This document shows, in pieces, positions 53,478 through 64,000 of a stretch of 64,000 nucleotides of DNA. This DNA is from Corallochytrium limacisporum Hawaii. Taxonomy: Eukaryota; Protista; Pluriformea. Location of the stretch: NCBI GenBank assembly GCA_002811645.1, contig PDIP01000126.1, forward strand, positions 62,833 to 126,832, read 5' to 3'. Position 1 is the first letter of the stretch. Every line of letters starts with the position of its first letter. Under the pieces are notes generated by a model. That model was not told the DNA's origin, ran no database searches, and saw nothing but the letters and a program-made list of their open reading frames with translations. Made by a program: the position numbers and the translations under genes.

Positions 53478-56449
53478 GGTATCGATGTTTGTGTGTATTC
53501 TATGGTTCGTCCGACCCGCCGTTTCCGGGCCAGACGGCTTGTTTGGTCTCAGTTCATTGTACCCTAACTCGGACGACTGGTGCCTATGATCAGAATAGTA
53601 TCACTTTCACTTATCACAGAAAATATATTGGTTGAACTAAAGTAACTTGTTCCAAATGCTAAAGAGCATGCTTGGATAGTGTTAGTGTTGGAAGCCAAGT
53701 ACCTATTCTCAGCGATGTTACATAGGGCCAATATACCATAGCTGTGTGAGTCTATTCCATTCGCTCTTGCAAAGAGTCATCCCCATTCCAACATGACTTT
53801 CAAAACCAGCGCGCGGATTTGTGTGTGGGTGTGTGTGTACGTGTTGCTTTGAGCGTGCCAGACCCAAACGCAATTCACTCCGAAACCGTCCTCCCCACGA
53901 CAACCGTCAAGACCCACCCCCTGGGTCTCCTTGCTGCCCTACCGTTTAGGTCCAACCGGGGACCCCAACCCTTCCCTGCGGGGAGGCCCGGGGGGGGGGC
54001 ACCGCGTATACATCGCCCAGCTTGTCCCTCCCCCCCCCTCCCCACCCCACCAACTCTCCCCTCTTCCTCTCCCCCCTTACTCTTCTCCCGGTTGGGGCCC
54101 CCTGAACTCAAGTACTGCGCCGGTGTTCAGGAAAGATACAAAGAAAGGGGAGGCCTTTCAGGTGGTTTTTTTTTTTCCTTTTGGGCCCAGCCGGAAAACC
54201 CGCCAGACGGGTGCCCCCCGTGTCCCTTTGTGCGTCCGCTGCCTTCTCCACTCTTGCCGCCATTAGAAAAATCTTTTCTCTCTCTCTGTCTCTACCTCTC
54301 TCTTCTTCCCCCCCTTCCCCCCCCTCCTCTCTTCGGCCGCATCTCTTGGCTGGCGGGGTGGGCCCTGCATGCCTCGATCGAGAGTGAGATTGTGGGAAAA
54401 ATGTGATGAAATTAGTATAGAAATCGCACGCGAAGGGGCACACTTCAGCGTCAAGAGCAGCCATCACGACAACCCCCCCCCCGGGGAAGAGAGACCCAAG
54501 CAAAGAGAGATCTGAGGAACGCGAGACCTGCGGTGTTGGGCCTTGAGCACTGGAAGGATGTTTCAACGGAAGAGAAAGTTCTGGAGGGGTGCCCCGCTAT
54601 GGCCAAAGAATTGGGTTTTTTTCTTCCTTTTCCTTGGATAGGGTCAGGTGACATTGACGCAGAATCGGGACCTTCGCCGAAAGGGGGCGGTGGCGACAAG
54701 CAAGAATGGGACGGACACAGAGGAACCGTAAAATGCATCTACCTCTGAGCTTCAGAGCTTCAGAGATAGACACGCGAACAATGAGCCAACACCGGGACGA
54801 TCAGAAGGGGAAGAGAGGCGATCGGACATCAAAGAAGGCATCATCGCCATGATACAGCACCCTCGTTACCTCCAGCCCAGCACAGGTTTCAAACAGGAAG
54901 CCCGCAGCTGCTCTTGATGCTCACCCAAGCATTTCCCGTCCCAGCAGAACCGCGCGACGGGGAATCTCGCCAAAACCAAAGAAAAAACAGAAGAATACCT
55001 CTTCTCCCGTCTTCCCCCTTTCCAACGTACCTTCCACTTTGCTGTGCCACCACCACGGTGGTGAGAACTATTTGCTGACGATAACAACGACGGGGAGGGA
55101 GGAAGGGAGGAGGTAGGCGCAGCGTGGTTCACTTTCCCGCCGGGCCAGATCTCTCTCCGGGGCTTTGCGAGTCCCGCGGGTTTGGGGGTAAGGGGGAGGA
55201 GGAGGAGGAAGATAATTTAACCATCGGCAATAGTAGGTGAATTGACTTTTTCACTGGGTTTACGTGTATCTTTTAATTAGATAGGGACCACCATTTCAGT
55301 TGTAGGAATATTATGAATGGACAAACGAAGTTTTTTCCTTGGGTTTCTGGTTTACTGCTTTGATTGTGGTTCTTGGACAGTTCTGAGGTGTGGGTATGAG
55401 TCACTAAGCTTTAATATTTTTTTCTGCTTTTTTTTTTCTTTTCATATTTTCTCCTCGGTCATTCCCGTGCGCCCACTCGCACGCCTGGGCACCGATTGAT
55501 ACACACAGAGGGAGAGTCCATACGAGCCCGCATCGGCTTGTGGGTCAGACCTTCCCATACATTGGGACCCAAAACGGCATTGAGGGAGGATGCTATCCAA
55601 AGGAGACCTTATACGGCCCCTGTGTGGCTTCCCGGGGCCTGCCTGGTTCCCATGCGGACCCGCTCCTCACAATACACTCGCTACCACCATTACCCCATTG
55701 CGTGAGTGTGTGTGGTAATAATGGGGGCAAGAAAACTTGGGCCAAAAGAGCAACGAGCGGGGGGGGGAGGGGTGGGGGGGCGCTTAAGAGAGAGAGAGGG
55801 AGAGCGAGAGGGAAGGAATTAAAAAAATACGGTAACATCTTGGTAGTGGAGGAGAAACTGGACTCCGGGTCAGCTTGCAGAATCTAAAACCAAGAACGAA
55901 CGACGTTGTGGTGCCCAAACTGCCCGGTTTCGCAACATTACCCGTCCAGGGCCTTAGGCCTTCCTCCCAGTTTTTGGTGGCGGGTCTCTGTACTTCTTCG
56001 CCTCGGTCCAACCCCACCCCCCAAGGTCCAGGGGGGGGGGTTCGGACTCTGTTGGGTGGCCTTTAGGGTTTGTTGACCTCTGACAAATATTTTTTTAACG
56101 CGATCTCTCGCTAAAGCCCTTTAAAATGGCCTGAAACTTTTTTCTCCATCTCTTCCCTTTCCTCTTCGCAAGTGTCACTGTACGGCAGAACGAGGGACCG
56201 CGAAGACGCCCCCCCCCCCCCGGGGGCCCTTATACTCTCTTGTGCTCTGTCGACAGAATGGAATTCCTATAGCTACTGCTTCCCCCGTCTCCNNNNNNNN
56301 NNNNNNNNNNNNNNNNNNNNNNNNNNNNNNNNNNNNNNNNNNNNNNNNNNNNNNNNNNNNNNNNNNNNNTGTGCTCTGTCGACAGAATGGAATTCCTATA
56401 GCTACTGCTCCCCCCGTCCCCCCCCCCCCCCGCTGGGTTCCTTTGTAAT

Positions 56450-57313
56450 GTGATTGCAGAGGCCCTTAGTCGCAGGTGGAGGCCAATTCGACGTCGTTCA
56501 CACCCGGGGCGCTCAAGTCTCGGGAGCAGGACACGACAATTTCCAGTATAAAAAGTATGGAGAGGGCAGATGGGTCTTTGGATTGCTGTATCCGAAGCCA
56601 GCAGGCACGCGAGCAGTAATCCCTGGCTGTAAGGGCAGCTGCCAACACAAAGCACAGAGTGATGAAAGGGGCACAATTCTCCTCTCTTTAATCTTTGTCG
56701 GTAAGACCTCACGGTGACGGACGGATATGACGACGATTTGATGATGACCAGGAAGGACTGTCGGTGATGTGCGATGGGATGGATCATGATCTGGCCATGA
56801 TCATTGGCTCCATACCTGCCTGCAGCAAATTGAACTTCGTAGAGTCAACGACCGTTAATGCCGGACACTGCAAATCCGGCACCGGCTCTTGGCAGATTCC
56901 GGCACGTGACCTTGAAGTGCAATGAAGCTGTCCTGGACGTGGACCAGGCTGTGGTGCAAGCCTAGGCTTTGTAGGAACGATGAACAGATTGATCTCACAG
57001 GTCCTTTGGGGACTATAACCCGGATCAATTCCCGTGGGTGCCAGTCCTGAATCTGATTCGTCTTCGAGAAAGAGCAATGGAAAGCGTTTGCATTTGAGTC
57101 TTCCTTTAGGAGACAACGCATACAGATCTGGTTATGATCATGAACATGACGCTGGCATTGTGGCCCTGTACGCTCCAGAACATGATGTTGGTATGACAGC
57201 CTCCACAAAGGCATAGTAGACCACTCCTTCACCAAGGAACCCGCATCATGTACCCCGTCGACTCGCCACATCTGCGGAACCCTTGCCATTGTTTTGAGGG
57301 CATACACGAGCAT
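56450..57313 (-). pseudogene. Possible decayed gene or 144-152 aa hypothetical protein
   Basis: Strong start context caaaacaATGG at 57289. Overlapping ORFs in three frames show host-like codons and hydrophobic segments, but no recognisable domain. Confidence 0.2.
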
Positions 57314-58283
57314 CGATCAGTGTGCATGCTCACGTACCAACAAATAAGGAAAACTCATGAAGACGTCTGGTAGTGTGGACAAAGTCAATGAGCACGATTG
57401 TGCACTAGTCACCATCATAGTTAGAGAGAACCCGGTGCGCCCAACCTGCGAGAGCATTACATCACTGCTGCTGCCGGGGTTCTATAGTGAATATATGAGC
57501 AAATAAAAACCTTCCATTCATGGCAGCGGAGACCGGGCAGTATCCGTGCTGATCGTCAGCCCGACAGGGTAACCAAGCCCATCAGCGGGGAAATCCATAT
57601 TTAATGTATAGAGAAATGCGCTGTAGAAAAGAAATTGTGATGTCAGAAATATCCCGGGAGCCGGCGTGGAAGAGGGAGTAAGTGCACGGTCGCGCAGCTG
57701 GGGGTTGGAGGGGGTTCTGCTCACTCGGTCATTTTACAGTACTGAATGGCCCGAAACGAGAGAGACAGAACGGGGCAAAAAAAAGATTTCTTCAAACCTG
57801 CCCCTCTTGTCGGTGTGGCCACCGGCAGACAGGTGTGTACAGGGTCAGCAGGGAACCGCTGTGACTGACCCCCAGAGTATACTGCTGCGCATAGTCTCCT
57901 GGGCGCCAAAACACAACGGGAAAAAAAAAATTACCACCGAGAGAGGAGAGAGCAAGCCGGCTTCCTGACTTTCGAGTCCCCGGGGGGGGGGGAGGCGGCT
58001 GTGACACGAGCGGGACGTTAGGGAAAAGCGGGAACTTTATCTTCAATGGTGGGCGTGGTACGCATCACAGGAGATGATACGGGGCACGGATAATACTTGT
58101 ATATATGCATGTTGGTGCCTACGTGTAAAATTTTTCATGCGATTTGGGCATCAACATCTGCAGAAATGATACCGTCCACGTATTTAAGGACCACCGAATC
58201 TCACAGATGCCGGATCAAGATCGGTAGGTAGCAACAACCAAGATACGGTAACAAGTCTTCTGTAATACACAACACAAATCAAC

Positions 58284-58427
58284 ATGTTTATGGCATTTTC
58301 TGCGATCCGTCGTCTGCGCAAGAAGAAGGGAGACAAAGATCAGAACAGCACCGAGCAACACAATGAGGCTGAAGCGGCACCAGTTCAGGCCCGTGATCCG
58401 TCACCGGAGTCCTATGAACTCAAGTGA
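58284..58427 (+). CDS. Microprotein 1 (47 aa): MFMAFSAIRRLRKKKGDKDQNSTEQHNEAEAAPVQARDPSPESYELK
   Basis: Translated by hand; absent from the ORF track. Leader cacaacacaaatcaacATG, in-frame TAA 7 codons upstream, host-like codon use, AATAAA at about 58672, and clear paralogy to the ORF at 59027. Confidence 0.7.
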   Translation: MFMAFSAIRRLRKKKGDKDQNSTEQHNEAEAAPVQARDPSPESYELK

Positions 58428-59026
58428 TTGAACCCAGACCACCTCAAGAGACCTAGTACTGTCTCTGATTTGATATGATATGTGCATGCAATGACTAGTC
58501 TATGCACGGCACATCGGATCTTCGGGCAGCACTTTAGAGAGATGATCAGTGCCCTTGTCAGTTCCCGTCAAATTCACCTGTCGAGCGAACTACGGTAATA
58601 CATGTCCACTCGGACTTGTTTGTCATTATCCGTAGTGAATATAGGGAACGAAAAGTAACCATTGTAAGAAAATAAAGAAAATCCATGTTTCAATCATACG
58701 CTGTTGCCTGTGGACACCGTATTTTCAGGCCTACTGAGGGTAGCCAGCGAGAGCCGGCCCGCCGCCCCCAGGGCCCCCCGGGGGGGGGGGCTTTTGGAAT
58801 CTTTGGTCCTAGGCAGGCCCAAGTGCGCGACGCACAGGAAACGGCCAATGCCTGTAAGGGTTGTGCCAAATGTGTACATTTGACTGTACAATAAATTACT
58901 AATACCAGTGGAAATCACATTGTACATGTATTTCATGGTCAGGATATTTGACAGAAATAGTCTCAGATCCATTTGCCAAGCCACAAGGTGAGAATCGGTA
59001 TTTCGCAACCCACGACACCAATCAAC

Positions 59027-59212
59027 ATGTACGTAGCTCTTGTCCGTCGACTGCGCAAGAAGAAGGCGGCAAAGGAGGAGGACAGCTCTCATCACGACAC
59101 TGGCACCGGATCGACACCAGTCGGGCCCTTGGGTCGTCTACGGAAGCGACGGGGTCTGGATTCAAACGATCACAAAACCACAGTGACTGAAGAGGTCGAT
59201 GTCAGTTCCTAA
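59027..59212 (+). CDS. Microprotein 2 (61 aa): MYVALVRRLRKKKAAKEEDSSHHDTGTGSTPVGPLGRLRKRRGLDSNDHKTTVTEEVDVSS
   Basis: First ATG of track ORF 58973..59212. Leader cacgacaccaatcaacATGT is 18/20 identical to that of microprotein 1. The RRLRKKK core is 23/24 nt identical with one synonymous change. AATAAA at about 59503. Confidence 0.7.
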   Translation: MYVALVRRLRKKKAAKEEDSSHHDTGTGSTPVGPLGRLRKRRGLDSNDHKTTVTEEVDVSS

Positions 59213-61394
59213 CACAATATATCCATGCTGCGACCGGTCAAGTCACGGACGGGAGCAATTAAAGGAACGTCCAGCACTCATGTCAGAATAGTTGTAATTC
59301 TCCAGCCCGCGACGAAGCACCCACGGAATGCCCCATGGTAGTCACCCCAATTCTTAATGTAGGGGGCCTCCTCAAGACCCACAATCGGATGTCAACGAAA
59401 TCGACGGAACAATCCCCGGTGAGCCCCCCTGTCGCCCGCGGGAGGTGGAGGGGAGTTGTTGGGTTGGCTGGCCGTTGGAGCTCTTTTCTTCAAAAAACCA
59501 ATAATAAATGTATTAAATTGACGGACAGCAATCTTCCACGATGAGTCACGATCTCTTCAAGCTTCCTCGCTTCTCTCATCGATTTCGGGCCATCCAGCGC
59601 TTCCAGTGTGGGAGCAAAATGCTCTACGGATGGTACCCGTGGCCTTTGAGGGCTGTAGTCAAGGCACTGATGTAACCGGCCGAAAGTACCCACACACATG
59701 TCTCTCAGCAGCGCTGCTAGCTTCCCTCTGGTCCGAAACGAATGCACAGGTTGATCAAATACAGATAGTCATGTTTGAGACGTTATCGCGCGCTGGAATC
59801 CCTAAGACTTGGACGCAGTCGAGTAAGATAAAATAAACAAGCCACCAACTTGCCAACTTAACAAGCATAGTACGGTATGGCCAAACGCAAAACGGGCGCT
59901 GAAATATGACCTATCGGGAGCATGATGGCTGGACGCACTGCTCGCCTCAATACCCTCGGTTGTGTGTGGCCCCCACGTCCCACCGGTGGTGGTGAATGTA
60001 CCGGACACCTTGCTTTCCATATATGTACACTGCAGGAAGGGGGACGGGTCGGCCTGCCTTGCCGTGCTTAAGCGGCCCCCAAGCAGCGGCTCCCGTCGGA
60101 GAGGGAGAATCCAGCCAATGTAAAAATATTTCAGTAGTGAATGTACTGGGGAGGGCGGCACGTGCCCCATTCCCTGGAAAAAAAAAACCTGTGCGCCCCA
60201 CCTCGAGACACCTGTTTCTCGTATAGAAAATGAATGGAAGTGTTTTGGCCCTTGATAGCCTTTTTTTTTTGTTCGTGCAGGAAAAGGAAAGGAGGAAAGA
60301 GGAAGAAAAAATTTCTAACACTCCCGCCAGTTTTGCTCTGAATATTAGTAATTGCATCCCACTAGGCGGTAAACATTTTCCATACAAAATAAACGGAGAG
60401 ACTTTGGGAAACCTCAAGTCGCCGCGGAGAGGGCAAGCTGTTCCCCCCTTCCACGATTTCCGGAGGCCGGGGCGGGGCCCGCGCGTGGCTGAAGAAAAAG
60501 TTACCGGAGCGCTTACGATCGGGCCACCGGGAGATGGCTGTGCACAGGGTCAGGCGGAGGGCACGGGAGTTCACACTCACGCACACGCAGGTGCCACTGG
60601 GTACGGGTGTGTACCTGCCAATACTTCTTGTGTTTGCGCACGGAGTGCTGGACTGGTACCTCTCGATTCGTTTGTTTTTGAACCGGTATGAATATAATGT
60701 GCACACCACGCCATCCATGTCCAGACTGCTGGTTGTCCGAATGCGTTCTAGAATGGCCTTTATGAACAGGGAATTCATCATGGTGGCGCGCACCGGTCGT
60801 GTGTGCACGGAGAGCGGCTTCCAATGCGACCGACACCCCACCCACACCGAAGAGGTGCAACTATGGGATCCCTACCAGCAAATGCACGACCTCGCCAAGC
60901 GAGAACATGTGCCCGTCTGCTGAGAGGGAGCAAGACAAAAAAAAAGTTTTCTTCGTTCTTCGTTGAGCCACTAGTATATTCGCTATAGAAACTGTAAAGC
61001 ATGCGTACAGGGCGATCTAACGGAACCTGCGTATTTGTTCAAGACAGTCCCGATAGAGTACCTCGCATACTGCAGGTCAGTGTGGATTATTCAGGTACCG
61101 CGACAGGCTTGGTGGCAGGCCCAGTGATTTTTATGGACGCGTATTCTAAGACGGACAATCATATTAGTGTGTTCTTCTGAGACCGTGCATTTGCAGTTTC
61201 GCTACCAGCGTGCGTATTGCTATCAGCGAATTTACAAAGCAGCAGGTATTTAAGTTCGTGGACGATGCACTACTTGACGGATTGTGATCAGACTTCAACA
61301 AGAAATTCAAAGACAAGCCACATACCACAGCGTACAACATCTACAACGACACATTACTTTGGAGTAAGAGTAAGCCTTATATCATCAGAACAGA

Positions 61395-61538
61395 ATGTTT
61401 TTCGCTATTTCTCTCGGAGTCCGTCGCATCGTCAAGCGCGCCAAGAAGATGAAGTCTGAGCACAATCAGGAGTCACCAGCGAACGAGGCGAACGAGTCCG
61501 GCATGGCTCCCCCGGCATACATGTACCACTACGCTTAA
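61395..61538 (+). CDS. Microprotein 3 (47 aa): MFFAISLGVRRIVKRAKKMKSEHNQESPANEANESGMAPPAYMYHYA
   Basis: Translated by hand; absent from the ORF track. Same hydrophobic, VRR, basic, polar layout and same length as microprotein 1. C/A-rich leader, in-frame TAA 8 codons upstream, AATAAA at about 61652. Confidence 0.62.
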   Translation: MFFAISLGVRRIVKRAKKMKSEHNQESPANEANESGMAPPAYMYHYA

Positions 61539-63299
61539 GCATCCTGAATAGCGCACATTTTCGCAACGGCATGGGATCAATATGAAGTTCCCCCTGTACA
61601 CACATAGCTTTGCATATCATCGACCATAGTCTTTTCAATACGACATTCTCAAATAAAGAATCCTATACTGGAATATAAGAATCAGGCAGGCTTACCAGGC
61701 TCGTCGAACCATTGTCTCCTGGACTATTGTCAACAGTTCTTGATGCTCTGGTTCAGGTCCGTACGAGGGCCTCTGCCGGAAACCACATGTGGTATGTGCG
61801 TCTTCACAGCCCGTGAGCAATCCACAGATACTTGGCCAAGTGCTAGAAACACTGTTGCCATATCCGCTGAAGCCCACAAAAGGGAGATAATTCAGGGAGT
61901 CACTTGCCTGGTACGTCAGATAGTCCTTGGCACGACGATCATGTCGAGCAATTCCTGGCTGTGGCCGGCGAGAAGCTGTCATATCCTTTACTGACTGAAG
62001 ATGATAGGCAACGTAAGACCTGACTCACCCAACGCTATTCGATCTATGCTACAGCGAGATTAGCGAGAGTGTTGCACAATTGTGCGGCCATAATGCCCCT
62101 CAACCAATTATGCAACCAGGCAGTTCCAGAAAATTCCACTGCGACCAGAACAGCTGCAGTTCCAACCAATACAGCGATGGCAATACTCTATGATCGTGGT
62201 TGTGTATCCTCCTGCGCAATGCTCTCACATTAGGTGTACCGTCACGGTTCTAAAAGTTTGGGTACGAACTATACCATGGTATTTCTAATGCTTCTGCGTA
62301 TGTGGAATGGAAACTTATCCCTGGTGTTCCTTGGACGGCTTCTGGCTGCCGCCTTAGCAAGTTTCAGTCGAGCACGTAGAAGTAGACATCCTTGACTGTA
62401 TCCATCCCTAAGAAATCAAACGAAAGAGGAAAGGCATTCATCTGTACCTCGTACCTGAAACCCTGTTGTATGCAATTCATTTACGGTGGGGCTCCGAGCG
62501 TTCTTGTTCTATTGTTCGTAGTCCAAATACGAGATCTCTCGCCCACAGCGATGGAACACTCTTCGTTACACGACAATCTTGCACTACTTGGGACCGTTCC
62601 ATTGTACGATTGACCAACTGCAGCAGACATGGAGGAATACCTTCCTTATTCGGAGGGGGTTAGCGGTTGTTGACCATGTCGATGGGAAGCTATACATGTT
62701 TGTTTCACCTAGGGGACACAGTAGAGGACTCCTTACAGGGCTTGTCCATGTCTCGCCTTGACTAACTACGCGACATGGTACTCCCAAATATATCTAGATT
62801 AGAAGGAGAATAGAACCGACAGACCCCACCTTGTCTTTAATATCCCCGTACTGTGGAATTTGTGGGAGGCAACACTGCCAACACATACGCGCCAGGGAGG
62901 TTCGTTGTCTACCGTCCCTGCTCTTTCGGTAGTAAAACTAATGCGAGGTTTATCTTCTTGGATCCAAGAAAGAAAATTTCTTTGGGAATGTGACCACCGT
63001 GAATGCAACCCATAGAACAGGTCCCCTTTGGACTGATCCATTGTGCTATGGGACAGTTGCACCAAGAAGTTGAGGAAGACTTTCCGAATATAGCAACTAT
63101 TCAGTCCCGTAAAGGCGAAATCCCGTACCAGCTAGGGACAACCATTCCGCGAAACGTCAGTTCGTCCACGGGGGTCCACCTCATGGGCATGGAAGCGAAT
63201 CCTGAAGACGATTTCAGGGTTCTCCGTCTCCGAAACACACCCTGAATCCGTCCCAAACCGGCATGCAGTGAAGTGTTTGCTGCCGAGAGAAAGGATATG

Positions 63300-63556
63300 G
63301 AGAAACACGGAGAGAGACGAGACAGAAAGAGAGCCAAAGTGACACACACAGTCCAAAACACAGGAACAGAGAGCCAGAATGACAGAGAGACAGAGAGACT
63401 GAGATACACACGGAAAGACGGAGACACACACGGAGAGACACACACAGAGACAAAGAGACACACACAGAGACAAAGAGACACACAGAGTGACACAGAGACA
63501 CACGGAGAGACGGAGAGTCACACAGAGAGACAAAGAGACAGAGAAACAGAGACAAA
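63300..63556. repeat. Degenerate (GA)/(CA) compound microsatellite (ACACAGAGAC-like units)
   Basis: Nearly T-free A/C/G repeat that explains the stacked CV/SL-rich ORFs. Confidence 0.9.
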
Positions 63557-64000
63557 ATAGAGATGTGTCTGCAGACGACCGTAGACTGAAGTTGAGGCCC
63601 CTACCACCCTTTGGGAAGGGGGGGGCATAAACCTACTGGCATACAAAGGGTATATGGGAGTCTTGCGGTAATTCTCAATACGTAGTATACTTCCTTATCC
63701 TTTGAGAGCAGGGGTGTCGGAAGAAGAGGTTGTCTTAAGATCAGGCCAACTTGCCACGAACCGCCCAAATCTTCCTGTGAAGAGTGTTTTTTTTTCTTTT
63801 TCTAAAAAAAAAAGAAGGAGCTATTCCCTCAATTAAATATCTATTTGAGATGCGCACCATCGCCACCACCGTATTACACACTTTGCTTCACCGACTATAA
63901 TCTCTGTCACCGCGGGATCGGGGATGTACATCAGTTGTGCGCTCCTGGTTCGTGGCGCGGCAGGGGAGGACGAGGGAGGGGGTTCAGTCGCAGGGGGGGG

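Follow-up and report, generated by a model that had tools for sequence, protein, structure and literature searches.

An unannotated tandem family of putative microprotein genes with a conserved N-terminal head in the unicellular holozoan Corallochytrium limacisporum

Three short open reading frames (ORFs) lie on the + strand of a 64,000-nucleotide stretch of the genome of Corallochytrium limacisporum Hawaii (the window; assembly GCA_002811645.1, contig PDIP01000126.1, here C29, positions 62833–126832), and the best explanation for them is a family of microprotein genes, arranged in tandem and unannotated, whose N-terminal module is conserved. That they are real, translated genes is moderately likely on sequence grounds, and their coding status appears moderately well supported. 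An earlier note, made from the DNA letters of the window, proposed such a family. Its reading stands in part: the three ORFs form a small, unannotated set of tandem paralogues, have coding-type codon usage and fit no known family, while the localisation and role of the putative microproteins are guesses. Each gene would be a stand-alone, intronless and lineage-specific unit with its own TATA-like box, an A/C-rich leader with A at position −3, an ORF of 47 or 61 codons and a downstream AATAAA.

Copy 1 (58284–58427, 47 aa) opens with the head MFMAFSAIRRLRKKK, which is followed by a polar acidic tail. Copy 2 (59027–59212, 61 aa) opens with MYVALVRRLRKKK and has a second basic motif, RLRKRR, at residues 37–42 (59135–59152), and copy 3 (61395–61538, 47 aa) joins the head MFFAISLGVRRIVKRAKK to a polar tail with PPAY at residues 39–42 (61509–61520). 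The common pattern of the heads is M-[F/Y]-x-A-hydrophobic...RR-[L/I]-x-K. These coordinates and N-termini reproduce those of the earlier note, and the sequence details on which it drew also hold. A 24-mer common to copies 1 and 2, TCCGTCG[T/A]CTGCGCAAGAAGAAGG, occurs exactly twice in the window (58306 and 59043; 0 expected), and its single difference is synonymous (CGT/CGA, both Arg); copy 3 writes the Arg-Arg pair as CGT CGC, with a third Arg codon. The leaders of all three ORFs are C/A-rich (A+C 60–66%, with A at −3), and an AATAAA lies 243, 290 and 113 nt past the stops of units 1, 2 and 3, respectively. In copy 1 an in-frame TAA (58263–58265) stands seven codons upstream of the start, with no AG from there to the basic motif. 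No GT[AG]AGT donor was found inside any of the three ORFs, nor any coding-like sequence after them. All three begin with ATG, have fewer than 100 codons and are not exons of a longer gene, as small ORFs (smORFs) are defined.

A genome-wide search for the head, as the earlier note had suggested, places the family at this locus alone. The degenerate DNA pattern M-[F/Y]-x-A-hydrophobic-x(1-5)-R-R-[L/I/M]-x-K, which was composed after the three copies had been seen, has three matches in the 24.1 Mb genome (24,109,830 bases in 286 contigs), all at the locus, on one strand, in frame and within 3.2 kb. The reverse strand and a reversed-pattern control each gave no match in the same 24.1 Mb. Since about 0.15 genome-wide matches are expected from base frequencies, it is very improbable that a third match would fall by chance within 3 kb of the duplicate pair. 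Looser patterns gave 17 and 7 matches genome-wide; the extra ones are out of frame, inside long ORFs or unrelated, and none is a further family-like ORF. A head-like MFGVLRRICR at 73–102 of the window (− strand) lies in no ORF of at least 80 aa and was dropped as chance. Full-length Smith-Waterman scores are 60 for copies 1 and 2 and 47 for copies 1 and 3, against roughly 21–23 ± 4–5 for shuffled sequences (reached in 0 of 5000); for the heads of copies 1 and 3 alone, a shuffle test gives p = 0.011. The shared 24-mer might have been part of a dispersed non-coding repeat, an objection that the earlier note raised against itself. It fails because the shared 21-mer is not dispersed (with up to two mismatches, the genome holds the two local copies and two unrelated two-mismatch sites) and because, apart from a satellite at 63.3–63.55 kb and a single 1-kb local duplicate, the DNA of 53.6–64 kb has no second copy in the genome.

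Units 1 and 2 are duplicates that can be aligned as DNA. Positions 58163–58408 and 58911–59144 are 62% identical (E 4e-16) over the TATA-like box, the leader and the first 34 codons, and the conserved blocks are the TATA-like GTATTT[A/C]A[G/T]G, the start context AATCAACATGT, the 24-mer and a block at a shared Pro-Val. The TATA-like boxes are GTATTTAAGG in unit 1 (58180–58189, 96 nt before the ATG) and GTATTTCATG in unit 2 (58928–58937, 90 nt before the ATG). The A/C-rich leader of unit 1 (58190–58283), which contains the in-frame TAA, ends in AATCAACATGT like that of unit 2, and the hexamer matches at 58671–58676 and 59503–59508 are the candidate poly(A) signals of the two units. A C/G homopolymer palindrome (CCCCG11-like, 57978–57995, + strand), some 300 nt ahead of ATG 1, is a possible upstream boundary of unit 1. 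It has a counterpart in a C/G-rich palindrome between units 1 and 2 (58757–58792), and 57978–57992 is identical to 58776–58790 (15 nt). Such a palindrome lies about 250–300 nt upstream of both ATGs, so the repeat period of about 740–800 nt would correspond to a whole small transcription unit. At four places between the small units (57978–57995, 58757–58792, 59416–59455 and 60440–60490) there are C-run/G-run palindromes of the CCCC G10-11 type, which could be unit boundaries or promoter elements. All seven AATAAA hexamers of 57.5–61.7 kb (57502–61657) are on the + strand, and the whole window holds 31 on both strands. Four of the seven, at 57502, 58890, 59832 and 60388, belong to none of the three ORFs and might signal additional short transcripts from the + strand.

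Unit 3 resembles units 1 and 2 at the peptide level only, in its head. It has in common with them the strand, a downstream AATAAA (61652–61657, the candidate poly(A) signal by hexamer match), the 47-aa length of copy 1 and the box GTATTTAAG, which in unit 3 lies at 61246–61254, 141 nt before the ATG. This 9-mer occurs only twice in the window (0.22 expected), once before unit 1 and once before unit 3. The family probably originated by local tandem duplication, with units 1 and 2 separated recently enough for their DNA to align and unit 3 split off earlier. A 32-nt direct repeat (84% identity, E 1.6e-4) upstream of units 1 and 3, at 57817–57848 and 60522–60553, may be a trace of an older duplication behind unit 3.

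Codon usage of the three ORFs is within the range of real genes. With five long genes of the window as reference, the in-frame codon log-odds of ORFs 1–3 are 0.32, 0.20 and 0.32 bits per codon, and their other two frames score near or below zero. The corresponding values are 0.25 ± 0.13 for 47-codon pieces drawn at random from real genes and −0.09 ± 0.14 for the other ATG ORFs of 40–90 aa in 53.6–64 kb. Among the 233 ATG ORFs of 40–90 aa in the window, ORF 3 ranks first, ORF 1 second and ORF 2 fourth; the three take ranks 1–3 of the 174 that lie outside the reference genes, and they are the strongest coding peaks of 53.6–64 kb. A score of synonymous choice, which ignores amino-acid composition, gives values of 0.17, 0.08 and 0.08 (ranks 3, 9 and 11 of 233), compared with 0.12 ± 0.10 for real genes and −0.09 ± 0.10 for the remaining ORFs. 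Moderate coding-like scores (about 0.25) also occur on both strands between units 2 and 3, at 60771–60911 (+) and 60695–60832 (−), in ORFs of 129 and 161 aa without a Pfam match.

Substitutions between copies 1 and 2 point in the same direction. Over the first 32 alignable codons, identity at codon positions 1, 2 and 3 is 21, 25 and 17 of 32, dN is 0.39 and dS 0.79, and the indels sum to six bases, a multiple of three. The earlier note held that the N-terminal part is preserved, and the conserved part is indeed the head (dN 0.21, dS 0.80; linker dN 0.53, dS 0.78), on small counts. The direction of dN/dS fits a coding sequence with a constrained head, although the counts are too small to carry this conclusion alone.

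The tails of copies 1 and 2, which the earlier note described as fully diverged, are less different than that. Up to a shared Pro-Val (residues 33–34 of copy 1 and 31–32 of copy 2) they align in frame with K, S, P and V identical, and beyond it a weak DNA alignment persists at a 1-nt offset (local score 11 with a 1-nt gap, against 7.7 ± 1.3 for shuffles and reached by 101 of 3000). After the Pro-Val, copies 1 and 2 most likely use different reading frames of homologous DNA, and a frameshift probably accounts for part of their divergence. This difference in frame would explain the 14 extra residues of copy 2 and its second basic motif; the frameshift seems to have made a head-like basic patch in the tail of copy 2. 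Tail-only protein similarity does not rise above composition-preserving shuffles for any pair (p 0.39–0.49). With different frames apparently in use after the Pro-Val, only the head and the linker look constrained. A bolder idea is that the family was born in this holozoan lineage and that selection acts solely on a portable N-terminal head of 13–18 residues (Met-aromatic, short hydrophobic tip, polybasic patch), while duplication and frameshifts exchange the tails freely. We consider this version rather doubtful; if true, it would amount to a natural ‘anchor plus variable cargo’ arrangement, traceable from birth to function in a relative of animals that can be transfected.

The predicted products are small and polar outside their heads. 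Net charge is +5 to +6 over the first 18 residues and negative over the remainder; in each head a hydrophobic run of 6–9 residues leads directly into a cluster of 5–6 Arg/Lys. The copy 3 head is strongly amphipathic (hydrophobic moment 0.57 over 18 residues). Single-sequence AlphaFold2 models give copy 3 a helix at residues 3–22 (pLDDT ~72) and copy 1 a shorter helix at 5–11 with low confidence, each with a coil tail. No membrane-spanning hydrophobic segment was found, the best 19-residue Kyte-Doolittle means being −0.84, −0.63 and 0.41. Each product would be a short N-terminal helix that starts Met-Phe or Met-Tyr and continues with hydrophobic residues and an Arg/Lys cluster into a disordered, net-acidic polar tail. 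A guess at the mode of action, from composition and the predicted helix, is that the head would anchor the protein peripherally to membranes, with the hydrophobic tip dipping into the bilayer and the basic patch binding acidic lipids, in the manner of polybasic-plus-hydrophobic anchors and of the N-terminal helices of Arf-like proteins; the variable tail would be held at the membrane surface. The tail of copy 3 would then present a PPxY-type motif there. Copies 1 and 2 lack PPAY, and a function common to all members as PPxY adaptors of Nedd4/Rsp5-type ligases does not fit the family.

The same heads can be read differently. The microproteins may be real while their basic cluster binds nucleic acids or directs import into the nucleus or nucleolus, or while the head acts as a mitochondrial presequence-like signal. 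RKKK, KRAKK and the second basic motif of copy 2 look like monopartite import signals, VRRIV of copy 3 fits the hydrophobic-x-x-hydrophobic-hydrophobic pattern of presequence receptors, and a hydrophobic stretch of transmembrane length is missing. The conservation of an aromatic residue 2 and of a hydrophobic run before the basic cluster argues otherwise, as an import signal needs neither, and acidic tails and Lys runs are unusual in presequences. We judge this alternative to be unlikely.

Searches for relatives agree with the earlier note in assigning the family to no known one. Pfam (at E up to 10), the PDB and Rfam (for the region) returned no match, and the ESM Atlas no usable one. A word-based protein search with copies 1 and 3, which covers proteins of 0.55–1.75 times the query length, gave no candidates. 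A phmmer search with copy 2 against 1.84 billion representatives produced one match (P0002), rejected as a tandem-repeat artefact that a low-complexity stretch had hit ten times. In a metagenome scan with the alignment of copies 1 and 2, none of 600 pattern matches was confirmed. A protein search of the organism’s own genome with copy 1 found only copy 1 itself, in a first pass too coarse for 47 aa. The exact ORF products are absent from a collection of 15 billion proteins and from public assemblies; an 882-aa protein encoded nearby is present (EukProt), which indicates that the ORFs are unannotated in at least that public set.

Several observations weigh against a family of translated microproteins. 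About 20% of ATGs here are followed by at least 47 open codons by chance, so open frames alone are weak evidence. The searches found no homologue beyond this locus and, with that, no cross-species conservation. The dN/dS contrast comes from 32 codons and is not significant alone; unit 3 has no significant DNA similarity to units 1 and 2; and the last third of copies 1 and 2 is probably unconstrained as protein, given the likely frameshift. The AlphaFold2 models are single-sequence predictions of low confidence, and the public gene set lacks the ORFs, although gene prediction commonly discards frames so short.

Many of these points suit a different explanation, in which the ORFs are untranslated chance frames in duplicated non-coding units, such as short long non-coding RNAs or promoter-proximal DNA, with the 24-mer and the start context kept at the DNA or RNA level or by gene conversion. 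The near identity of the 24-mer in nucleotides between flanks only about 62% identical speaks for it, as do the frame-shifted tails of copies 1 and 2, and the surrounding ~14 kb is otherwise gene-free. This explanation has difficulty with a coding score that is specific to the frame and lies in the real-gene range for all three ORFs, even on synonymous choice alone, and with a unit 3 that retains the peptide pattern in different codons and without DNA similarity. Indels within the first 34 codons of copies 1 and 2 that preserve the frame, codon position 2 as the most conserved and position 3 as the least, and the lack of an Rfam match also tell against it. We regard a non-coding origin as the main rival, though a somewhat unlikely one, and prefer the reading of the ORFs as microprotein genes.

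The genomic setting allows a further explanation. Other genes of the window are eukaryotic and mostly uninterrupted, and they include a REV3-type polymerase, a dynamin, an Atos-like protein, a FUSC-type transporter and a C2H2 zinc-finger protein. The microprotein cluster sits beyond them in the final 14 kb of the contig. At its end, base 130385, the contig runs into satellite and gaps, and no telomere repeat was found there. From 53.6 kb to that end (window 53600–64000 and C29:126833–130385, ~14 kb) there is no long ORF and no Pfam signal, which is unusual because the annotation of 7,535 genes for C. limacisporum (PMC5560861) implies about one gene per 3 kb. An assembly gap at 56293–56369 falls within this gene-poor stretch, and the last 3.5 kb of the contig include 2119 N. 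A direct local duplication of about 1 kb (78% identity, ~3.8 kb apart) pairs 62527–63500 of the window with C29:129366–130381; it ends in satellite and contains no microprotein unit. The satellite, (ACAGAGAG)n / (AGAGACACAG)n, occurs at 63366–63556 of the window and at the contig end, recurs on more than 25 other contigs, often at their ends, and is a likely source of assembly breaks.

In such surroundings the ORFs could be relics, that is, 5′ fragments of a once longer gene that were duplicated and are decaying as pseudogenes, with the heads as leftover N-termini, for example of an organelle presequence. A gene-poor region with satellites, gaps and a local 1-kb duplication near a contig end is where relics might be sought, and the frameshift between copies 1 and 2 would be in keeping with decay. 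Yet no other gene in the genome begins with this head, and past the ORFs there is no coding-like continuation, GT[AG]AGT donor or Pfam signal. Copies 1 and 3 are both 47 aa long and each is followed by AATAAA, and codon usage has not decayed. Relics are in our view a lesser rival and quite unlikely, and intact microprotein genes remain the reading that we favour.

If the three ORFs are translated, the known gene complement of this key unicellular relative of animals would grow by an orphan family of microproteins. The published annotation omits ORFs so short, so that the microproteins would be additions to it. They would also offer a compact case of young genes evolving through tandem duplication, in which the targeting head is conserved and the tail free. 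If the ORFs are not translated, the locus instead illustrates how far codon statistics can mislead on short ORFs. Corallochytrium can be stably transfected (bioRxiv 10.1101/2020.11.12.379420), which makes localisation and knock-out tests feasible.

Comparison with known systems begins with the heads. Arf-like GTPases and Grh1 also have Met-Phe or Met-Tyr starts and a short N-terminal amphipathic helix able to bind membranes. The heads described here share the Met plus aromatic start and, by prediction, the amphipathic helix at the extreme N-terminus, but their basic cluster is much denser and no sequence homology was found. Membership of the Arf/Arl/Sar small GTPases was rejected, as no GTPase or other folded domain comes after the head (Pfam is empty at E up to 10) and the ORFs end after 47–61 aa. 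Anchors of the K-Ras tail and MARCKS effector-domain type depend on lipid modification or on placement inside larger proteins. By analogy only, the heads resemble them in having 5–6 Lys/Arg beside a hydrophobic element and a charge of +5 to +6 in 18 residues, whereas here the element would be the unmodified N-terminus of a 47-aa protein. Single-pass microproteins of the sarcolipin, phospholamban and Pmp3/Sna type belong to the same size class, and copy 3 carries a PPAY motif, as in yeast Sna3. A transmembrane microprotein or signal-anchor was rejected, as it needs a hydrophobic segment of about 18–20 residues and the best 19-residue mean here is 0.41 or less. The closest likeness is to the orphan microproteins encoded by eukaryotic smORFs, which likewise have fewer than 100 codons, are missed by annotation, occur in one lineage, combine a simple helix with a disordered region and expand by local duplication. 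Those are mostly from animals, yeast and plants and have ribosome-profiling or peptide support, whereas the present family comes from a unicellular holozoan and is known from sequence statistics alone. The orphan family would belong to this known kind, the lineage-specific microproteins, and is not a new kind of system.

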